From Selaginella moellendorffii (taxonomy: Eukaryota; Plantae; Lycopodiophyta): 64,000 bases of DNA. The notes below the pieces were generated by a model that was given only the letters and a program-made list of their open reading frames with translations, did no database searches and had not been told where the DNA came from. Each line of letters begins with the position of its first letter. Position 1 is the stretch's first letter. The position numbers were made by a program, and so were the translations under genes. The DNA lies in the NCBI RefSeq assembly GCF_000143415.4, contig NW_003314365.1, positions 263,902 through 327,901 on the forward strand, given 5' to 3'. Below, piece after piece: positions 31,900 to 38,244 of this stretch.

Positions 31900-33300
31900 T
31901 ATATACCTTAAAATAATAATATAATAGGCTGAGATTATAAATTAGTTTATTAACTTAAAAACATAAAGTAACTTTTAGGGTTTGTATAAATTAAAAAACT
32001 ATTATATAATATATTTATAAAATAAGTATTTGAATTGTTTTCTTTCTTTAAAGGATTTGTGGGTGATAAAAAATTAAGATTTTATATTATAACACTTCAG
32101 AACTAATCCTTTTATTTTATGTATATCAGTTATAATTAAGTAATAACAGCATACTGCTTTAAAAATAATTTCAATTTAAATAATTATAATGTTTTTTGTT
32201 TACTTAACTTTTTTTCTACTATTTTAAATTTAAATATTTAATAACTATTGTAAATTTTTATATGATACAAGTATTATATTTATTGACTATTTCTCACCCA
32301 AAAAAATAGTATAAGTATTGAGTATTATAGTATAAGTACTATAATATACAAATACTATATGTTTAGTTTTATTTATTTATATTTTGTTTAAATTTCTATA
32401 TTATAATTATAATAATTAATTAATTCTAAACTTTCATTTTAAACTCAAGGTGTATATTCAATATTAATTATAAAAATTCATTATAAAGTGGTAGACTAAA
32501 GTCCTATAACAACAAAAATAATAAATTTAAATTCTTAAATAATTGAAGAGATAAAAGGAAAAATTATTTAAGAATATTTAGACTTAAAATTTATCTCACT
32601 ATTTCTTTTGAACTTTAAGCAATTTTTTGGAGCTTAAAAAGTTAGCTAGTTAAATAAAAAAATTGCAAATTTGATTAAAATTAGATAAGTTGAGTTTTAA
32701 TAATTTATAAAAACCCTAAATTTTACAAAAACTATAAAATTTAAAAGCTAATAGTATTACATTCTTAATTAACACAAAATATGCTCACATAAAATATCCA
32801 GGGAATGAACTCCATGACAAAATATTTACCCACATCACTCAAGAACTTCCATTTTTATGGTTTTAAGCTCTAATCCTTTGTTAAGTGGTTGAATTAATTT
32901 TTAATTTTTATATCAATAAATATTACATTTATAATAAATGTGCAAAAGAACCAAATATGTTATTTTTAATGTCATCAAATATTGTTATAAAAATAATATC
33001 CAAACCCACCATTTACATTCCATAGGTGCAAACTCCAACATGTTAATGAATATTTTGACAAATCCTTAATATAATAAGTGTAAAAAAAATTTAAATTGGG
33101 AACTAAAATTTTTAAAATATAATTATAATTAATTTAAAGAGGCAGATTCTCAATAGGTTACTTTAAAGTGGGTTTCATTTGATTAGTTAAAGAGATTGAT
33201 TATTTACATGGTTTATAATATTAGTTTCTAATCAAGCCACAAGTTTCATTTGTAAGTTTCTTTTTTTCGTGGTTTATTAAACATGATTCACATTAAAACT
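31900..33300. other. Extremely AT-rich non-coding block, probably decayed non-autonomous TE sequence
   Basis: No ORF of 60 aa or more. Sharp compositional contrast with the flanks, similar to the block at ~6960-8030. Confidence 0.5.
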
Positions 33301-33716
33301 TTTGGAACGGAAAATGCCTCACATCAAAATAAGACACTGATGGCAAGCTCTTTAGTTTGATGCGATCGGCGCATCTAAAAGCTTTTGTTTCTAGGAGGCA
33401 CAGGATGACAGTCTTCGTGAGAAGTTTTGAAACGAGTTAAAGCAATTTCAAGGACCCAATCGTTGTTCCAAAACCTTGAAAATGGTTTAGCTGACACAGA
33501 CTATTGTGTTTCGCTGCTCTCGCCATTCGATTCGGCACATCGATGGAGCTGTGATTTCCGAGGGCATCGCCATCGGAGCTTGTCGACTTGATGATGCAAA
33601 TGGGAGCGATGATAGGGTCTTTTCTCGGTTTCCTCACATTTCTCTCTCATATTGTACTTTTGAAACCTTTTAATCTTTTCAATATTTTCAAATTAGTATT
33701 TTAAGATCTGTTTTTG

Positions 33717-35355
33717 TCATCGTATCAATCTTGGTCTCATGAATTCCGAGAGTATCTGAAAGAAAAACATGCAAGAAAAATCAACCCATTTTTCAAGCCA
33801 CTCTTGCTACCTTGTCGTCAACTTCCGCTTTTAGTTGCTGGAGATTCTCCAGCACTTCCCACAGAACCTTGCTGAGGTCGTTTTTCAGGTCTTCCAGAGA
33901 TCTCTTTCCTGACGAGAAGTCCTGTGAGAGCCTTGATTAATATACGAACAAAGCATGTTTTAAGTACATTACCGCTTTCATTTCTTCAAGAACGGCATCG
34001 TTTTCCTCGAAAAAGGTGAGGTACGCGAGCACAGACTCCACGGCAGCACCAGCCAACTGAAACGACAGTATTGGAGAAAAGAACACGCCAAATAAAGGAG
34101 TTTTGTGTAACCTTTTGCTTGATCTCCTCCAGCGTATCGGTGACAAAGATTGCTGAGTTGGGAGAACTTGCAGACATTTTGCCAGAACCGTCACCCGCCT
34201 GGGTGAGGCGACAGCATAAGAAAGAAGTAAAACAAGGAAAAACGATAGCTCACTTCGATGCTCGGTAGAAACCGGGACTCTATCAAAGCGGGCTTGTAGA
34301 GCTTGAGGCGTGGAGCCAAATCCCGACTGAGCCTGAAGTATGGATCCTACACAGAAAGAAAGAATGAATAAAAGTGGTAAACAGACATGAAAAGTTAGAC
34401 CTGATCAATTGCACATGGAATGAGACATCTCATCTTGATTCCCTCTCCAAACACATCATCGAAAGACGTCGAGAATGCTGGTGCAATCTGATGTTACATT
34501 CAAATGACATGAGTAAAAGTCTACTAGAGCAGCGAGCAATACCTGGACAGCGGGGTACAAAAGCTTCCCGAGGACATCCGTTTCTGCGTTCAATCCAAAA
34601 ACAGCACTCATCTGCAGGCTCCGTCGCAAAGATTCTCCAGTGATCAAAGAAATCATCATACCGCATTGCTGCTGAGAAAACTCGAAATAGTGAGCACGTT
34701 GTCGAACAGGGCACTGTAGGGAGCCGGAGACATAAGAAAAGATCAAAACGAGATTACCGCACCACGTACCCAGAGACATAGTCTAAATTAGAGAATATAA
34801 AAGTCCGCTCCAAACGAAATCCGCAAGAAATGATATCCTTGGCATTGTTTCGGCCCAGTCTTTGGCACTCTTCCTGGCTTATATCTTTCCAGATGAACTT
34901 CTCATCATCGGATAGCTGAATCACCAGAGGGACATCGAAAGCGTCCTGCAAGTACCTTTGGAAATCGTTAGAAACACTCCTAGAGCTTGAGAGAGTAGAG
35001 TGCGTACTTTGTGAACATGAATTGCACAAGGTGGCCCAAATGTAAGGATTCCGACGATGGTCCACGCCCCGTGTACAAGAAGAACTTGTGGCCTTGCTCG
35101 TACGCATCGAGAATGGACTCTAGATCCCTGGTAGAGGAGAGGGGATTGCACGGGTTTACCGAAACGAGCATACCTGTGAGCGAAGAAAATCCCGCGGCGC
35201 AAGAATGGATGGGCGGGCTTGTTGGTCAGCTTCTCCAGTCGCTGGATGAGCTGTGGATCGATCAGCTTGCATCCAAAATCCGAGACGATCCGCGCGTAAT
35301 CAACGGCGCCATTCCTCGCCGAAACAGAGTAAGGCGTCACAACCTGTTCACCCAT
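33717..35355 (-). CDS. Divergent cytosolic-type tryptophanyl-tRNA synthetase paralog (multi-exon, intact frame)
   Basis: [15 protein letters not shown] (HIGH), [16 protein letters not shown]|DPYFR and GKMSAS (KMSKS). Exons join in frame via GT-AG introns to ...[12 protein letters not shown]. Confidence 0.92.
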
Positions 35356-35436
35356 AATTCTAGGGCAGATATTAAAGGTTCCGGCAAACTTTATATTCTC
35401 TTTGGTGACATGGCTGCCCTCCTTTTCATGGCGAAC

Positions 35437-38244
35437 TTAAAAACCATGAAACAATGGAGGTGGCAAGCCCAGATCCTTGCTCTGCTCCACGCTGCAATGC
35501 ATCGTTCCAGGGATCGCTCCAGACACCAGCCTTGCCGGCTCAAATCCCGAAGCTACGAAGTGAGCCAGTGCCAGAGTGCCATCGACAACATCCCGCAAGT
35601 TTGGAAGCGACATGGACAGTGTCATTGGCCGCTTCACCGCTGCTCCAGCCTTTGCCTGCTGCTCACTCGCGCTTCCTCTGTCCAGCTTTGTCATCTCCAG
35701 GAACCTCTCGGTTGCAGCCTCCCACGACAAGCGATGGCACTCCTCGGCCGACAGCGGCACCGGCTCCGACGCCATGGCCACCTTCACCTTCTCCACGAAT
35801 TCCGTGGGGCTGCTGTAAGTGAGGCAGTTTGGGAAGCCCCGGAAGAACTCGTTGGACGGATGATCGGCGCAAACAACGATCTTTCCCATGGCCAGTGCCT
35901 CTGCCGTCGTCGTGCACACCACATCGCTCACGCTTGGATTGATAAACACCTTATAGCTGCAACAGAGACCCGTTAGTAAGCAACCATATCCAAGTCCAAA
36001 AGAGAGTACCTGTGTAGAGACTCGTCTGCATGGTCTCTGCCTTGATGGAAATTTATGCCCAGGCCAAGGTTCTGAGCCGTCGACTTCACATCGGCTGCAT
36101 CTTCTCCGGAACCATAAACGTCCAGCTTCAAGTCCGCCAGGTCCTGCTTGTATTGCGCTAGTAAATTAACAAGTTCCCTGTACCCCTTTCCCCATATCAT
36201 CTTGCCGAGGAAGTAAGCGCCCTTGGTGAAGGCAGACTTGCCAGAGTCTGTTTCCACGGTCACCTTCTTCCCAATCTCCAAAAACTTCGGACTCACGCCG
36301 TGGACGTTGCAAACTTGCGATTTCGGCAGCTCTTGTGTAGCAGCGGAGAGCCGCAATACCTGTAACACCGCGGTTCACTACAAGCAGAATCAAAGTGAAG
36401 AAAAGCACGGCGTACCTTGTTACAGTAGATGCCGACCACCCAATTATTGATGTGCTTGAGTAGAAACGCTTGCAAGGCACCGTTCTTTTCGCGTTGAACG
36501 TACTCCAAGTAGTTGGTGTGGACCACGCCAATCACGTCCTTGAACTTCTTGTTCCATCTTCTCCCGTGGTAGTACCACGTGAGATGCTCCGGCTCCTCCA
36601 AAACCGCGACGTCTGCTTCTTTATCGGGTATGAACTGCGAGATATCACCGCAAGCCAGTATACTTCGCTTGTGCGTCGAGAACTGCAAATTCACCAGCAT
36701 TAAGACGATCGCTATGATACAAGCTTACTCTGCCGGGGTAGAATGCAATCTTGAAATCCGCCTTGAATCCAATTCTTTCCTCCAGCCAAGTACGAACGTA
36801 CGATTCCTGTTCCTCGGGAGTGTTGAAGCTCATGTGGCTGGGATATACCAGAGCCTGGTCCTTCTTACAAAGCCAAGGAATGAGCAAGGTCACATTTCTC
36901 ATCCCGTCCTTGGCTAAGTATGCCGCACGGAACAAAGGATTAACAGCGGTTCCTGTCATCCATGGCAAGCTTGCCGTCGTCACGATTGCAATTTTACGCC
37001 TTCCATCGTCTGGCAAATCCGCAGCTTCAGTACCCTCCTTCCACATTCCACCTCTGTACCTGTACCCTGTGCTCTGCAGAACACTAGCGACCCTCAAGTC
37101 CAGGTCGTCCTTGGGTTCTGACTCTGTCGACGTTGCTACAAGCTCCGCGTTGCCGCTGGATGCGCGTTTGCACCGCCGCAGCATCTTACAGAAGCTCACG
37201 GAGACGTCTGCATGATCATACAGTCAATGCCACAAAACAGAAACACGAACCTTTTCTCACGCCGAGTTGATCAAGGAAAGGCTCTGATTGCCTCACCAGA
37301 TTCTCCAGCAGCTCGGGAACGTCCAAGGGCGCCACATCATTTCCAGGCTCCTGACGCGCCTTCGTTAAGAACTACTAAGTAGAAGTCTAGAAAGAAAAGA
37401 GTCGAACCTCTGTAAGTTTTCTCGCACCATCGGAATTTGGAAGAGTGAGTTTCTGCAACAAGGAGCAAACGAAAGCAAAGCTTATGCTCTGAGAACCAGA
37501 AGAGAGGTGGCTTACCAGGCTGCTCTTGACGTTCTCAAACAGTTCCGTCTTCTTGACGTTCTCGAGGAACTCGGAGGGCGTCTTGCTCTTGGCCGCAGTC
37601 GATTCCAAATCCCTGAGTCCTTCTTTCATTCGTTTGAGAGGCTCCCAGTCCTCTGAGGCTGGCAACTTCACCATCTTTCTCGTCCGTTTGGCACTGGTGC
37701 CTGTGCCCCTCTCCCGCCACCTCCAGCTCGCATTGTCGCCCTTGACCCAAGGGGAGCGCTGCTCCAAGGAAGTAGTGGATGGATCGTCGCCATCGCCATC
37801 GCTGGCCAAGGGAGCAAGAGCCTTCTTGAGCATGGACAGATCCATCCTGTCCCTGCTCCTCTTGGAGTCATCACGCTTGACGAAGTTGGGATCCGACTGG
37901 ATTCTCCTGAAAGTGGAGAGCGTGGGCCGCAACCTCCGTATGAATTCCACGTCCTCCACCTGTGCCGAGATGGCTGTGAGCGGAGAAATGGCCAGAGGAG
38001 CCGGCGACGCGTGCTGCCTCTCCTTGAATCTCCCCAGGAGATCGCGACTGCTGCCCGGGACTGGAAACCTAAAATTCTCCCACTCCTTGTCTAGGGTGCT
38101 GGCCAGATCCCGGAACGATTTGGCCCGCGCCTTCATCAGCTTGAAGTCCTGATCCGCGCTCCTTTGCACGTCCGATAAGCTCCGAGAGATGAAGGACAGA
38201 GCTCGCTCCGTCCGCCCATCCACGGAATCCACCCACGCCGCCAT
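35437..38244 (-). CDS. DGD1: Digalactosyldiacylglycerol synthase 1 (long N-terminal extension + GT4 domain)
   Basis: [65 protein letters not shown] and [22 protein letters not shown]. Confidence 0.97.

Follow-up and report, generated by a model that had tools for sequence, protein, structure and literature searches.

What could be the role of a plant tryptophanyl-tRNA synthetase (TrpRS) that has retained the site for tryptophan (Trp) and ATP and has lost the part that reads the anticodon? The question is raised by a gene on the minus strand of a 64,000-nucleotide stretch of the Selaginella moellendorffii genome, referred to here as the window. An earlier reading of this DNA, made from the sequence alone, had described the gene as an intact TrpRS paralog of that kind, and its claims are taken up below along with the results that bear on them.

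Gene structure, transcripts and alleles

The gene model was made by reading the minus strand of positions 33600-35500 by hand and was then checked by script. It contains an open reading frame (ORF) of 1110 nt, which encodes 369 aa without interruption, and its ten introns are all of the GT-AG type and 46-56 nt in length. The protein that had been read earlier is reproduced by this model, including HLGH, QLSDDEK, AIDQDPYF and KMSAS, the exon that follows DTLEEIKQK and the later helix. Residue for residue, the product is XP_002990135.1 (P0270; SELMODRAFT_185043, UniProt D8T3F6, scaffold GL377669.1), which carries the NCBI name “tryptophan--tRNA ligase, cytoplasmic” from Selaginella moellendorffii. 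The parts of the gene are as follows:

33717..35355, minus strand: complete coding sequence of the paralog, with 11 exons, 369 aa and the stop codon at 33717-33719; hand-built and script-checked
35174..35355, minus strand: exon 1, N-terminal hairpin and helix alpha1' holding the tRNA 3' end; D99 kept, K102R, R106D (human numbering); no transit peptide
35008..35127, minus strand: exon 2, LYTGRGPS and HLGH (ATP site), Y159 of the Trp pocket; 75% identity to the canonical Selaginella exon
34770..34955, minus strand: exon 3, VIQLSDDEK with Q194, E199 and K200 of the Trp pocket
34543..34713, minus strand: exons 4 (34713-34662) and 5 (34611-34543) with intron 4, CP1 helices alpha5/alpha6, dimer interface and acceptor-stem binding (role of CP1: PMC1538984)
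34254..34487, minus strand: exons 6 (34487-34401) and 7 (34346-34254) with intron 6, PAVQ (Q284), CAIDQDPYF, and helix alpha9 with R321 and R326
34112..34198, minus strand: exon 8, KMSAS loop and helix alpha10, ending in ...EEIKQK
34057..34111, minus strand: intron 8, 55 nt; the canonical counterpart interval holds a 24-aa AFSGG exon and one more intron
33973..34056, minus strand: exon 9, five extra residues (LAGAA), then 23 residues homologous to canonical exon 10
33811..33921, minus strand: exon 10, helix alpha14; L426S, T427L, G428E; K431 kept
33717..33755, minus strand: exon 11, C-terminal end and stop codon

The profile matches of the protein are those of a eukaryote/archaeal-type TrpRS (class Ic). 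The paralog scores 60 bits against Pfam tRNA-synt_1b (PF00579; cut-off 21.1) and 213.9 bits against the NCBIfam trpS equivalog TIGR00233 (cut-off 176.75), for which the canonical Selaginella enzyme reaches 292.1. The signature motifs GxGxS, HxGH, AIDQ and KMSAS are all present, as are the Trp-specific residues Y159 and Q194. The paralog is a single 369-aa unit, and its ORF is flanked by stop codons, so it is not fused to a second unit. Beside it, the 64-kb window contains no other TrpRS-like sequence, and none adjoins the canonical gene. The upstream neighbor has glycosyltransferase family 1 domains and, in our reading of its sequence, looks like a digalactosyldiacylglycerol (DGDG) synthase.

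Splicing could be followed in contigs of four runs, each from a different study. The introns spliced out of them are the ten predicted ones and no others, with CT..AC ends that correspond to GT..AG on the gene strand, and no alternative junctions or inserted letters were found in these contigs over the paralog. In addition, 11 runs from five studies contain 0.42-0.47 of the sampled 31-mers of a 1801-nt stretch, where a share of 0.44 is expected if only exon-internal words are present. These runs were only guessed to be RNA, and it is the fully spliced contigs themselves that are the evidence of transcripts. The sequence-only reading had proposed an RNA-seq check of the junctions at about 34059-34113, with the concern that an exon encoding AFSGG might have been missed there. 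The junction 34056|34112 across intron 8 is present in all four runs, spliced as predicted, and is the sole junction observed at that place. A hidden AFSGG exon is thus ruled out, both by this single junction and by the length of the intron, since 55 nt is too short for 20 aa.

The other haplotype of the assembly carries the same gene (XP_024519360.1, P0151, scaffold GL377666.1) with eleven exons of identical length. Between the two haplotypes, 13 of the 1110 exon positions differ (7 non-synonymous, 6 synonymous and no indels), compared to 11 of 529 intron positions and an 8-bp indel; the flanks also carry indels. The NG86 dN/dS is 0.34, with a one-sided p of 0.05 against neutrality, a value that rests on 13 changes. 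A further allele, unlike both haplotypes at several sites, was seen in one run (X13), again with no indel across the covered part of the coding sequence (CDS). The haplotype comparison is weak but consistent evidence of constraint on the paralog. Together, the open frame, the ten GT-AG introns, the two intact haplotypes and the spliced contigs of four runs bear out the earlier description of the gene as intact.

Relatives and the missing exon

The search for a second, canonical cytosolic TrpRS, which had been suggested along with the first description, found one on another scaffold. This gene, SELMODRAFT_442375 (P0285; 390 aa, 12 exons, scaffold GL377589.1), shows all the canonical features, YALSGGGD and MLTGEIK among them. 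Since it is present, the paralog is an extra copy and not the housekeeping enzyme, and the idea that the paralog might be the only cytosolic TrpRS is ruled out. In a full-length protein search with XP_002990135.1, the paralog's own cluster scored 805 bits and SELMODRAFT_442375 came next at 443 bits, followed by hundreds of plant TrpRS at 417-440 bits. No ortholog beyond S. moellendorffii rose above this canonical background in the full-length search, which covered proteins of 203-645 aa. No third Selaginella TrpRS was returned by protein searches with exon 3, a profile, the full length, or the canonical anticodon domain. The literature was also searched for Selaginella TrpRS and for trans-heterodimeric synthetase paralogs, and nothing relevant was found.

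In the tree, the paralog falls inside the streptophyte TrpRS clade (support 92/96), and in the best tree it groups, weakly, with the canonical Selaginella enzyme (49/63). The branch leading to the paralog measures 3.21 substitutions per site, compared to 0.39 for the canonical copy. The paralog is 53-56% identical to plant TrpRS, whereas the canonical Selaginella enzyme shows the 69-76% identity that canonical plant TrpRS have to one another.

The exon structures of the two Selaginella genes can be aligned almost completely. The canonical exons are 182, 120, 186, 52, 66, 87, 93, 81, 72, 69, 111 and 54 nt long, and those of the paralog 182, 120, 186, 52, 69, 87, 93, 87, 84, 111 and 39 nt. All ten intron positions of the paralog are common to the canonical gene, with the same intron phases. 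A retro-copy or a pseudogene was rejected in view of the ten introns at ancestral positions, the intact frame and the expression. What the paralog has no counterpart of is canonical exon 9 (72 nt, 24 aa), which encodes IANYALSGGGDTKELQRKNGANLK. The net loss is 19 aa, measured against the canonical Selaginella enzyme and 184 canonical TrpRS alike, and corresponds to about residues 372-390 of the human protein; the earlier estimate of about 20 aa, including the SGG loop, was close to this. Going by the human structures, what the missing exon encodes is the segment wrapped around the anticodon, namely the end of alpha10, the AFSGG loop and alpha11.

The exon could have been lost in more than one way. 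It is possible that exon 9 was lost whole and that the next acceptor shifted 15 nt upstream, and it is also possible that most of exon 9 was deleted along with intron 9. The divergence of the two sequences is too high for these routes to be distinguished. Under either route, the paralog is, as judged from its exon structure, a DNA-level duplicate of a plant cytosolic TrpRS gene.

Two further comparisons were made. Loop-less TrpRS also exist in metamonads, and a common origin of these enzymes and the paralog is rejected by the approximately unbiased (AU) test (p=0.018). A double TrpRS (P0001) was looked at as a possible fused version of the kind of pair proposed below, and was set aside when residue mapping placed its C unit as dead in both functions.

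Retained and lost contact residues

The contact residues used here were taken from human TrpRS structures, and their numbering was set by HMMER alignment to the human chains. In the human enzyme, the anticodon pocket is formed by the helices alpha10 (364-375), alpha11 (384-390) and alpha14 (427-450), and the loop between alpha10 and alpha11 wraps the anticodon triplet (PMC1538984). The anticodon is contacted by F377, S378, G380, R381, D382, I384, H387, L426, T427, G428 and K431 (PMC1538984). The 18 residues that contact Trp and ATP are listed in PMC2275098.

The three classes of contacts have fared very differently in the paralog. For Trp and ATP, 17 of the 18 contacts are identical, and the one exception, A168S, is a main-chain contact, so the catalytic core is kept as had been claimed. 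Six of the ten acceptor-arm/CCA contacts are identical (D99, N261, F267, G268, R321 and R326); the changes K102R, T259S and G265A are conservative, and R106 is variable among canonical enzymes too. In the anticodon pocket, by comparison, one contact out of 11 is identical (K431). Seven loop and helix contacts are deleted within the 19-residue gap, in agreement with the reported loss of the anticodon-reading loop, and the remaining three are changed (L426S, T427L and G428E). The sequence-only reading had also held that the T and K contacts of the later helix were replaced, which is right for T427, now a leucine, and wrong for K431, which is kept as the K of DLKN. By Fisher's test, the anticodon contacts differ from the catalytic contacts (p=6e-6) and from the acceptor contacts (p=0.02). 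A similar picture emerges from the columns that are near-invariant among the 184 canonical sequences. In exons 1-8, 103 of 122 (84%) are kept, versus 13 of 26 (50%) in the C-terminal exons (p=4e-4). This non-uniform loss of conserved sites argues against neutrality. The most diverged of the retained parts is exon 4, with 17% identity to the canonical gene.

The AF2 model of the paralog is a confident one (pLDDT 91.9, pTM 0.92). In it, the helices of the C-terminal domain form a compact bundle, and alpha10 runs into alpha12 via a four-residue linker. Foldseek comparisons gave TM-scores of 0.94-0.95 to human TrpRS (2QUI, 2AZX, 1ULH), including an entry of the tRNA complex, so the Rossmann fold and the helical C-terminal domain match those of solved TrpRS structures.

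It is useful to compare the paralog with TrpRS of other kinds. With canonical eukaryotic enzymes such as human WARS1 and SELMODRAFT_442375, it shares the fold (TM 0.95), the PF00579 and TIGR00233 matches, HxGH/AIDQ/KMSAS, the Trp pocket (Y159, Q194, E199, K200 and Q284) and acceptor-arm residues. It differs from them in having no 24-aa exon for the alpha10-alpha11 loop and alpha11, in the replacement of L426, T427 and G428, in its shorter N-terminus, and in the strong divergence of CP1 helix alpha5. Bacterial TrpRS are also without helix alpha11; however, they keep the equivalents of F377, S378, G380, T427, G428 and K431 (PMC1538984), while the paralog keeps only K431. The loop-less metamonad enzymes, from Carpediemonas membranifera and a Barthelona species, have an intact active site, a deleted AFSGG loop and a replaced TGE.K helix, much like the paralog. 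Their loss was independent (AU p=0.018), and K431 has been lost in them as well.

Possible functions of the paralog

In TrpRS, tRNA is bound across the dimer: one subunit charges it, and it is the other that reads the anticodon (PMC1538984), a point that the sequence-only reading had not taken into account. As a result, a subunit without a pocket disables its partner's active site and not its own, and the active site of the paralog is usable if its partner has an anticodon pocket. This arrangement favors one of the four roles that the sequence-only reading had listed without choosing among them, namely that of a heterodimer subunit. The paralog could be the catalytic subunit of a heterodimer in which the partner supplies the anticodon pocket, a reading that is preferred here, tentatively and with somewhat less than even confidence. 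We infer the heterodimerisation, the identity of the partner and the aminoacylation activity alike. The proposed course of events is that the plant cytosolic TrpRS gene was duplicated at the DNA level and that one copy lost the exon encoding the loop and helix around the anticodon and evolved fast, with its Trp/ATP site and its grip on the acceptor end of the tRNA preserved. The anticodon would be placed on one subunit of the class Ic dimer and the CCA end would enter the active site of the other, and each dimer of the paralog and a pocket-bearing partner would thereby have a single complete site for charging tRNA-Trp. The likelier partner would be a putative copy with a dead active site and intact anticodon residues, in which case the other cross-subunit site would be wholly dead; the canonical TrpRS is the alternative.

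That class Ic enzymes can evolve such a division of labor is indicated by the TyrRS of trypanosomatids. As outlined in PMC8319005, this is a double-length chain with one catalytic unit, which carries a deletion within its anticodon domain, and another that is without KMSKS, and activity depends on both; the pseudo-dimer of Leishmania major and T. brucei is credited there to Larson 2011 and Kaser 2018. As far as that outline goes, the likeness to the paralog lies in the class, in a competent unit whose deletion cripples its own anticodon domain, and in the possibility of one complete cross-subunit tRNA site. The difference is that the two trypanosomatid units are fused and belong to a TyrRS, whereas the Selaginella unit is a separate 369-aa TrpRS gene beside a normal TrpRS. 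A more specific form of the preferred reading would have the paralog and a putative anticodon-only, dead TrpRS as a two-gene split, in which the two proteins would be obligate partners and would share just one tRNA site, formed across the subunits. The split would have arisen by complementary degeneration and would perhaps be tied to the tRNA economy of a plant with tRNA-less mitochondria. This form is possible, and rather doubtful.

Several points weigh against the heterodimer. The CP1 helix alpha5, which lies at the interface, is 17% identical to the canonical gene, and this could mean a new partner or, equally, an interface that is lost or purely homomeric. With a canonical TrpRS already in the genome, it is hard to see what a second, split enzyme would add. 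That no ortholog was found outside S. moellendorffii among proteins of 203-645 aa and that the haplotype dN/dS is borderline also count against it, as does the existence of the loop-less metamonad TrpRS with intact active sites, which might work alone.

The metamonad enzymes bring up the alternative that the paralog is a stand-alone homodimer, charging tRNA-Trp through the identity elements of the acceptor arm (discriminator A73, G1:C72) and whatever other contacts remain, such as K431. The acceptor-arm contacts and K431 are indeed kept, A73 is described as the major identity element (PMC1538984), and the TrpRS of Carpediemonas (P0128) and Barthelona (P0132) are loop-less yet have 18 of 18 active-site residues. 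However, mutations of K431 alone lower aminoacylation by the human enzyme 290- to 790-fold, and C34 and C35 count among the major identity elements (PMC1538984), while here ten of the 11 anticodon contacts are gone, and the metamonad loop loss is of separate descent; an enzyme that works alone is unlikely. The paralog could also be an expressed duplicate that is functionless or decaying, possibly mildly dominant-negative through titrating the canonical TrpRS. The branch of 3.21 versus 0.39 substitutions per site would fit such decay, as would the failure to find orthologs among proteins of 203-645 aa and the haplotype differences, 7 of 13 of which are non-synonymous with a dN/dS test at only p=0.05. 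What makes a functionless or decaying gene unlikely is that the frame, 20 of 20 splice sites and 17 of 18 active-site residues are intact after about 44-47% protein divergence, and that the invariant columns are kept at 84% in exons 1-8 versus 50% in the C-terminal exons. Both haplotypes are also in frame, the run X13 contig is free of indels over the covered CDS, and correctly spliced transcripts of the gene come from several studies.

A complete Trp/ATP site next to a lost anticodon pocket is, of course, also what would be expected of an enzyme that activates Trp independently of tRNA, making Trp-AMP for specialised metabolism or signalling nucleotides, or acting in amino-acid sensing. Adenylation headed the list of the sequence-only reading, which also named sensing, and such purely tRNA-free roles are opposed by the retained acceptor-arm contacts. 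Residues that serve only the acceptor arm and CCA end (D99, N261, F267, G268, R321 and R326) are kept, and K102R and T259S are conservative, which is unexpected if tRNA is no substrate. No biosynthetic genes adjoin the paralog either, and a tRNA-independent role appears improbable. Another thought is that the paralog is a eukaryote-type TrpRS dedicated to organelles, where it would charge imported A73-type tRNA-Trp as in trypanosomes. The mitochondrial DNA of S. moellendorffii is without any tRNA genes (PMC5654404), and trypanosomatids have a separate mitochondrial TrpRS (PMC8319005). Like the paralog, the mitochondrial TrpRS2 of Trypanosoma brucei is a second eukaryote-type enzyme beside the cytosolic one, in an organism whose mitochondria import all their tRNAs. 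Unlike it, TrpRS2 carries a presequence, and its anticodon domain is adapted to an edited anticodon; the paralog has neither feature, being essentially without a pocket. The Selaginella protein begins right at the conserved hairpin, and its frame is closed 29 codons upstream of the ATG by a stop codon, with no start in between. The transcript is collinear with the genome upstream of the ATG, so there is no presequence, and the organellar role is therefore highly improbable. That in-frame stop, at which the upstream glycosyltransferase gene ends, also rules out an N-terminal targeting extension.

As for the preferred reading, that of a heterodimer, the kind of system is already known from the trypanosomatid TyrRS, at least as that enzyme is outlined in the source named above, and a plant TrpRS divided between two genes would be a new form of it. 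The idea behind it is that a duplicated homodimeric synthetase that binds tRNA across its subunits can lose complementary halves, which leaves the copies mutually dependent. To our knowledge, such loss in a class Ic synthetase has so far been seen only as a fused pseudo-dimer, in the trypanosomatid TyrRS. If the two halves were indeed separate, expressed plant genes, they would offer, within the translation machinery, a natural example of complementary degeneration or of constructive neutral evolution, and one that could be tested directly by mixing both proteins and measuring charging.

Even without such pairing, the gene has something to say about the family. The element of eukaryotic TrpRS that reads the anticodon lies on a single exon, and a protein that has lost it still has a confident fold model and intact active-site residues. 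The annotation “tryptophan--tRNA ligase, cytoplasmic” hides a protein that probably differs in function. By the pattern of its retained residues, the Selaginella paralog is a maintained TrpRS in which the catalytic core is whole and the anticodon pocket has been gutted, and it may charge tRNA only when it is paired with a partner subunit that bears the pocket.

The glycosyltransferase neighbor and the AT-rich flank

The TrpRS paralog that lacks the AFSGG exon has a glycosyltransferase gene as its upstream neighbor, and the same gene is found at the haplotype-2 locus (L002) and at L003:

Window 35372-37199 and beyond, also L002/L003 109-2919, minus strand: glycosyltransferase gene upstream of the TrpRS paralog

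Its 829-aa product carries glycosyltransferase family 1 domains and, judged by sequence, looks like a putative digalactosyldiacylglycerol (DGDG) synthase. The stop codon of this gene lies about 80 nt before the ATG of the TrpRS paralog and is in frame with it. A contig of 1537 nt, assembled from the single sequencing run X1, extends upstream past this ATG toward the glycosyltransferase gene; therefore, either the 5' UTR of the paralog overlaps the 3' end of the glycosyltransferase gene, or a degree of read-through occurs. Directly downstream of the 3' end of the paralog, the stretch at window 32860-33300 is very AT-rich and gene-poor, the genic sequence being richer in GC.

A third allele of the paralog

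In sequencing run X13, which bears the label of another organism code, the paralog is present as a third allele that combines variants of haplotype 2 with private ones:

Window 33866, 34003, 34460, 35089, 35091, 35218, 35236 and 35289: sites of the X13 allele, X13 contig compared with the window

The private changes are I23V, H74L, and two synonymous substitutions, and no indels are seen over the part of the gene that X13 covers.

Anticodon-pocket variation among TrpRS relatives

The canonical TrpRS of S. moellendorffii is encoded on another scaffold, by a gene with a GC-AG boundary at intron 10:

L001 10001-11755: canonical S. moellendorffii TrpRS gene

At the anticodon-contact positions, this enzyme reads YALSGGGD, whereas other plants have YAFSGG(R/Q)D. 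Also unlike other plants, it has K and Q at the positions of human I384 and H387.

Residue mapping also covered other TrpRS enzymes. In the TrpRS of two metamonads, Carpediemonas membranifera (P0128) and Barthelona sp. PCE (P0132), all 18 of the 18 active-site residues are present, the AFSGG loop is deleted, and the contacts of helix alpha14, K431 among them, are replaced. P0001, a 793-aa protein encoded on a JGI metagenome contig of 2936 bp, joins two eukaryote-type TrpRS units on one chain. The N unit has lost KMSAS, but its AFSGG/TGE.K anticodon residues persist, as do HxGH and the Trp pocket; the C unit is degenerate in its anticodon pocket as well as in its active site.

Among plants, the annotated TrpRS models of Gossypium barbadense (P0296, 376 aa) and Camellia fascicularis (P0333, 383 aa) have no AFSGG segment and are probably gene models in which the AFSGG exon was skipped. 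Both retain MLTGEVK. Such skipping illustrates how readily the AFSGG exon is lost as one unit.
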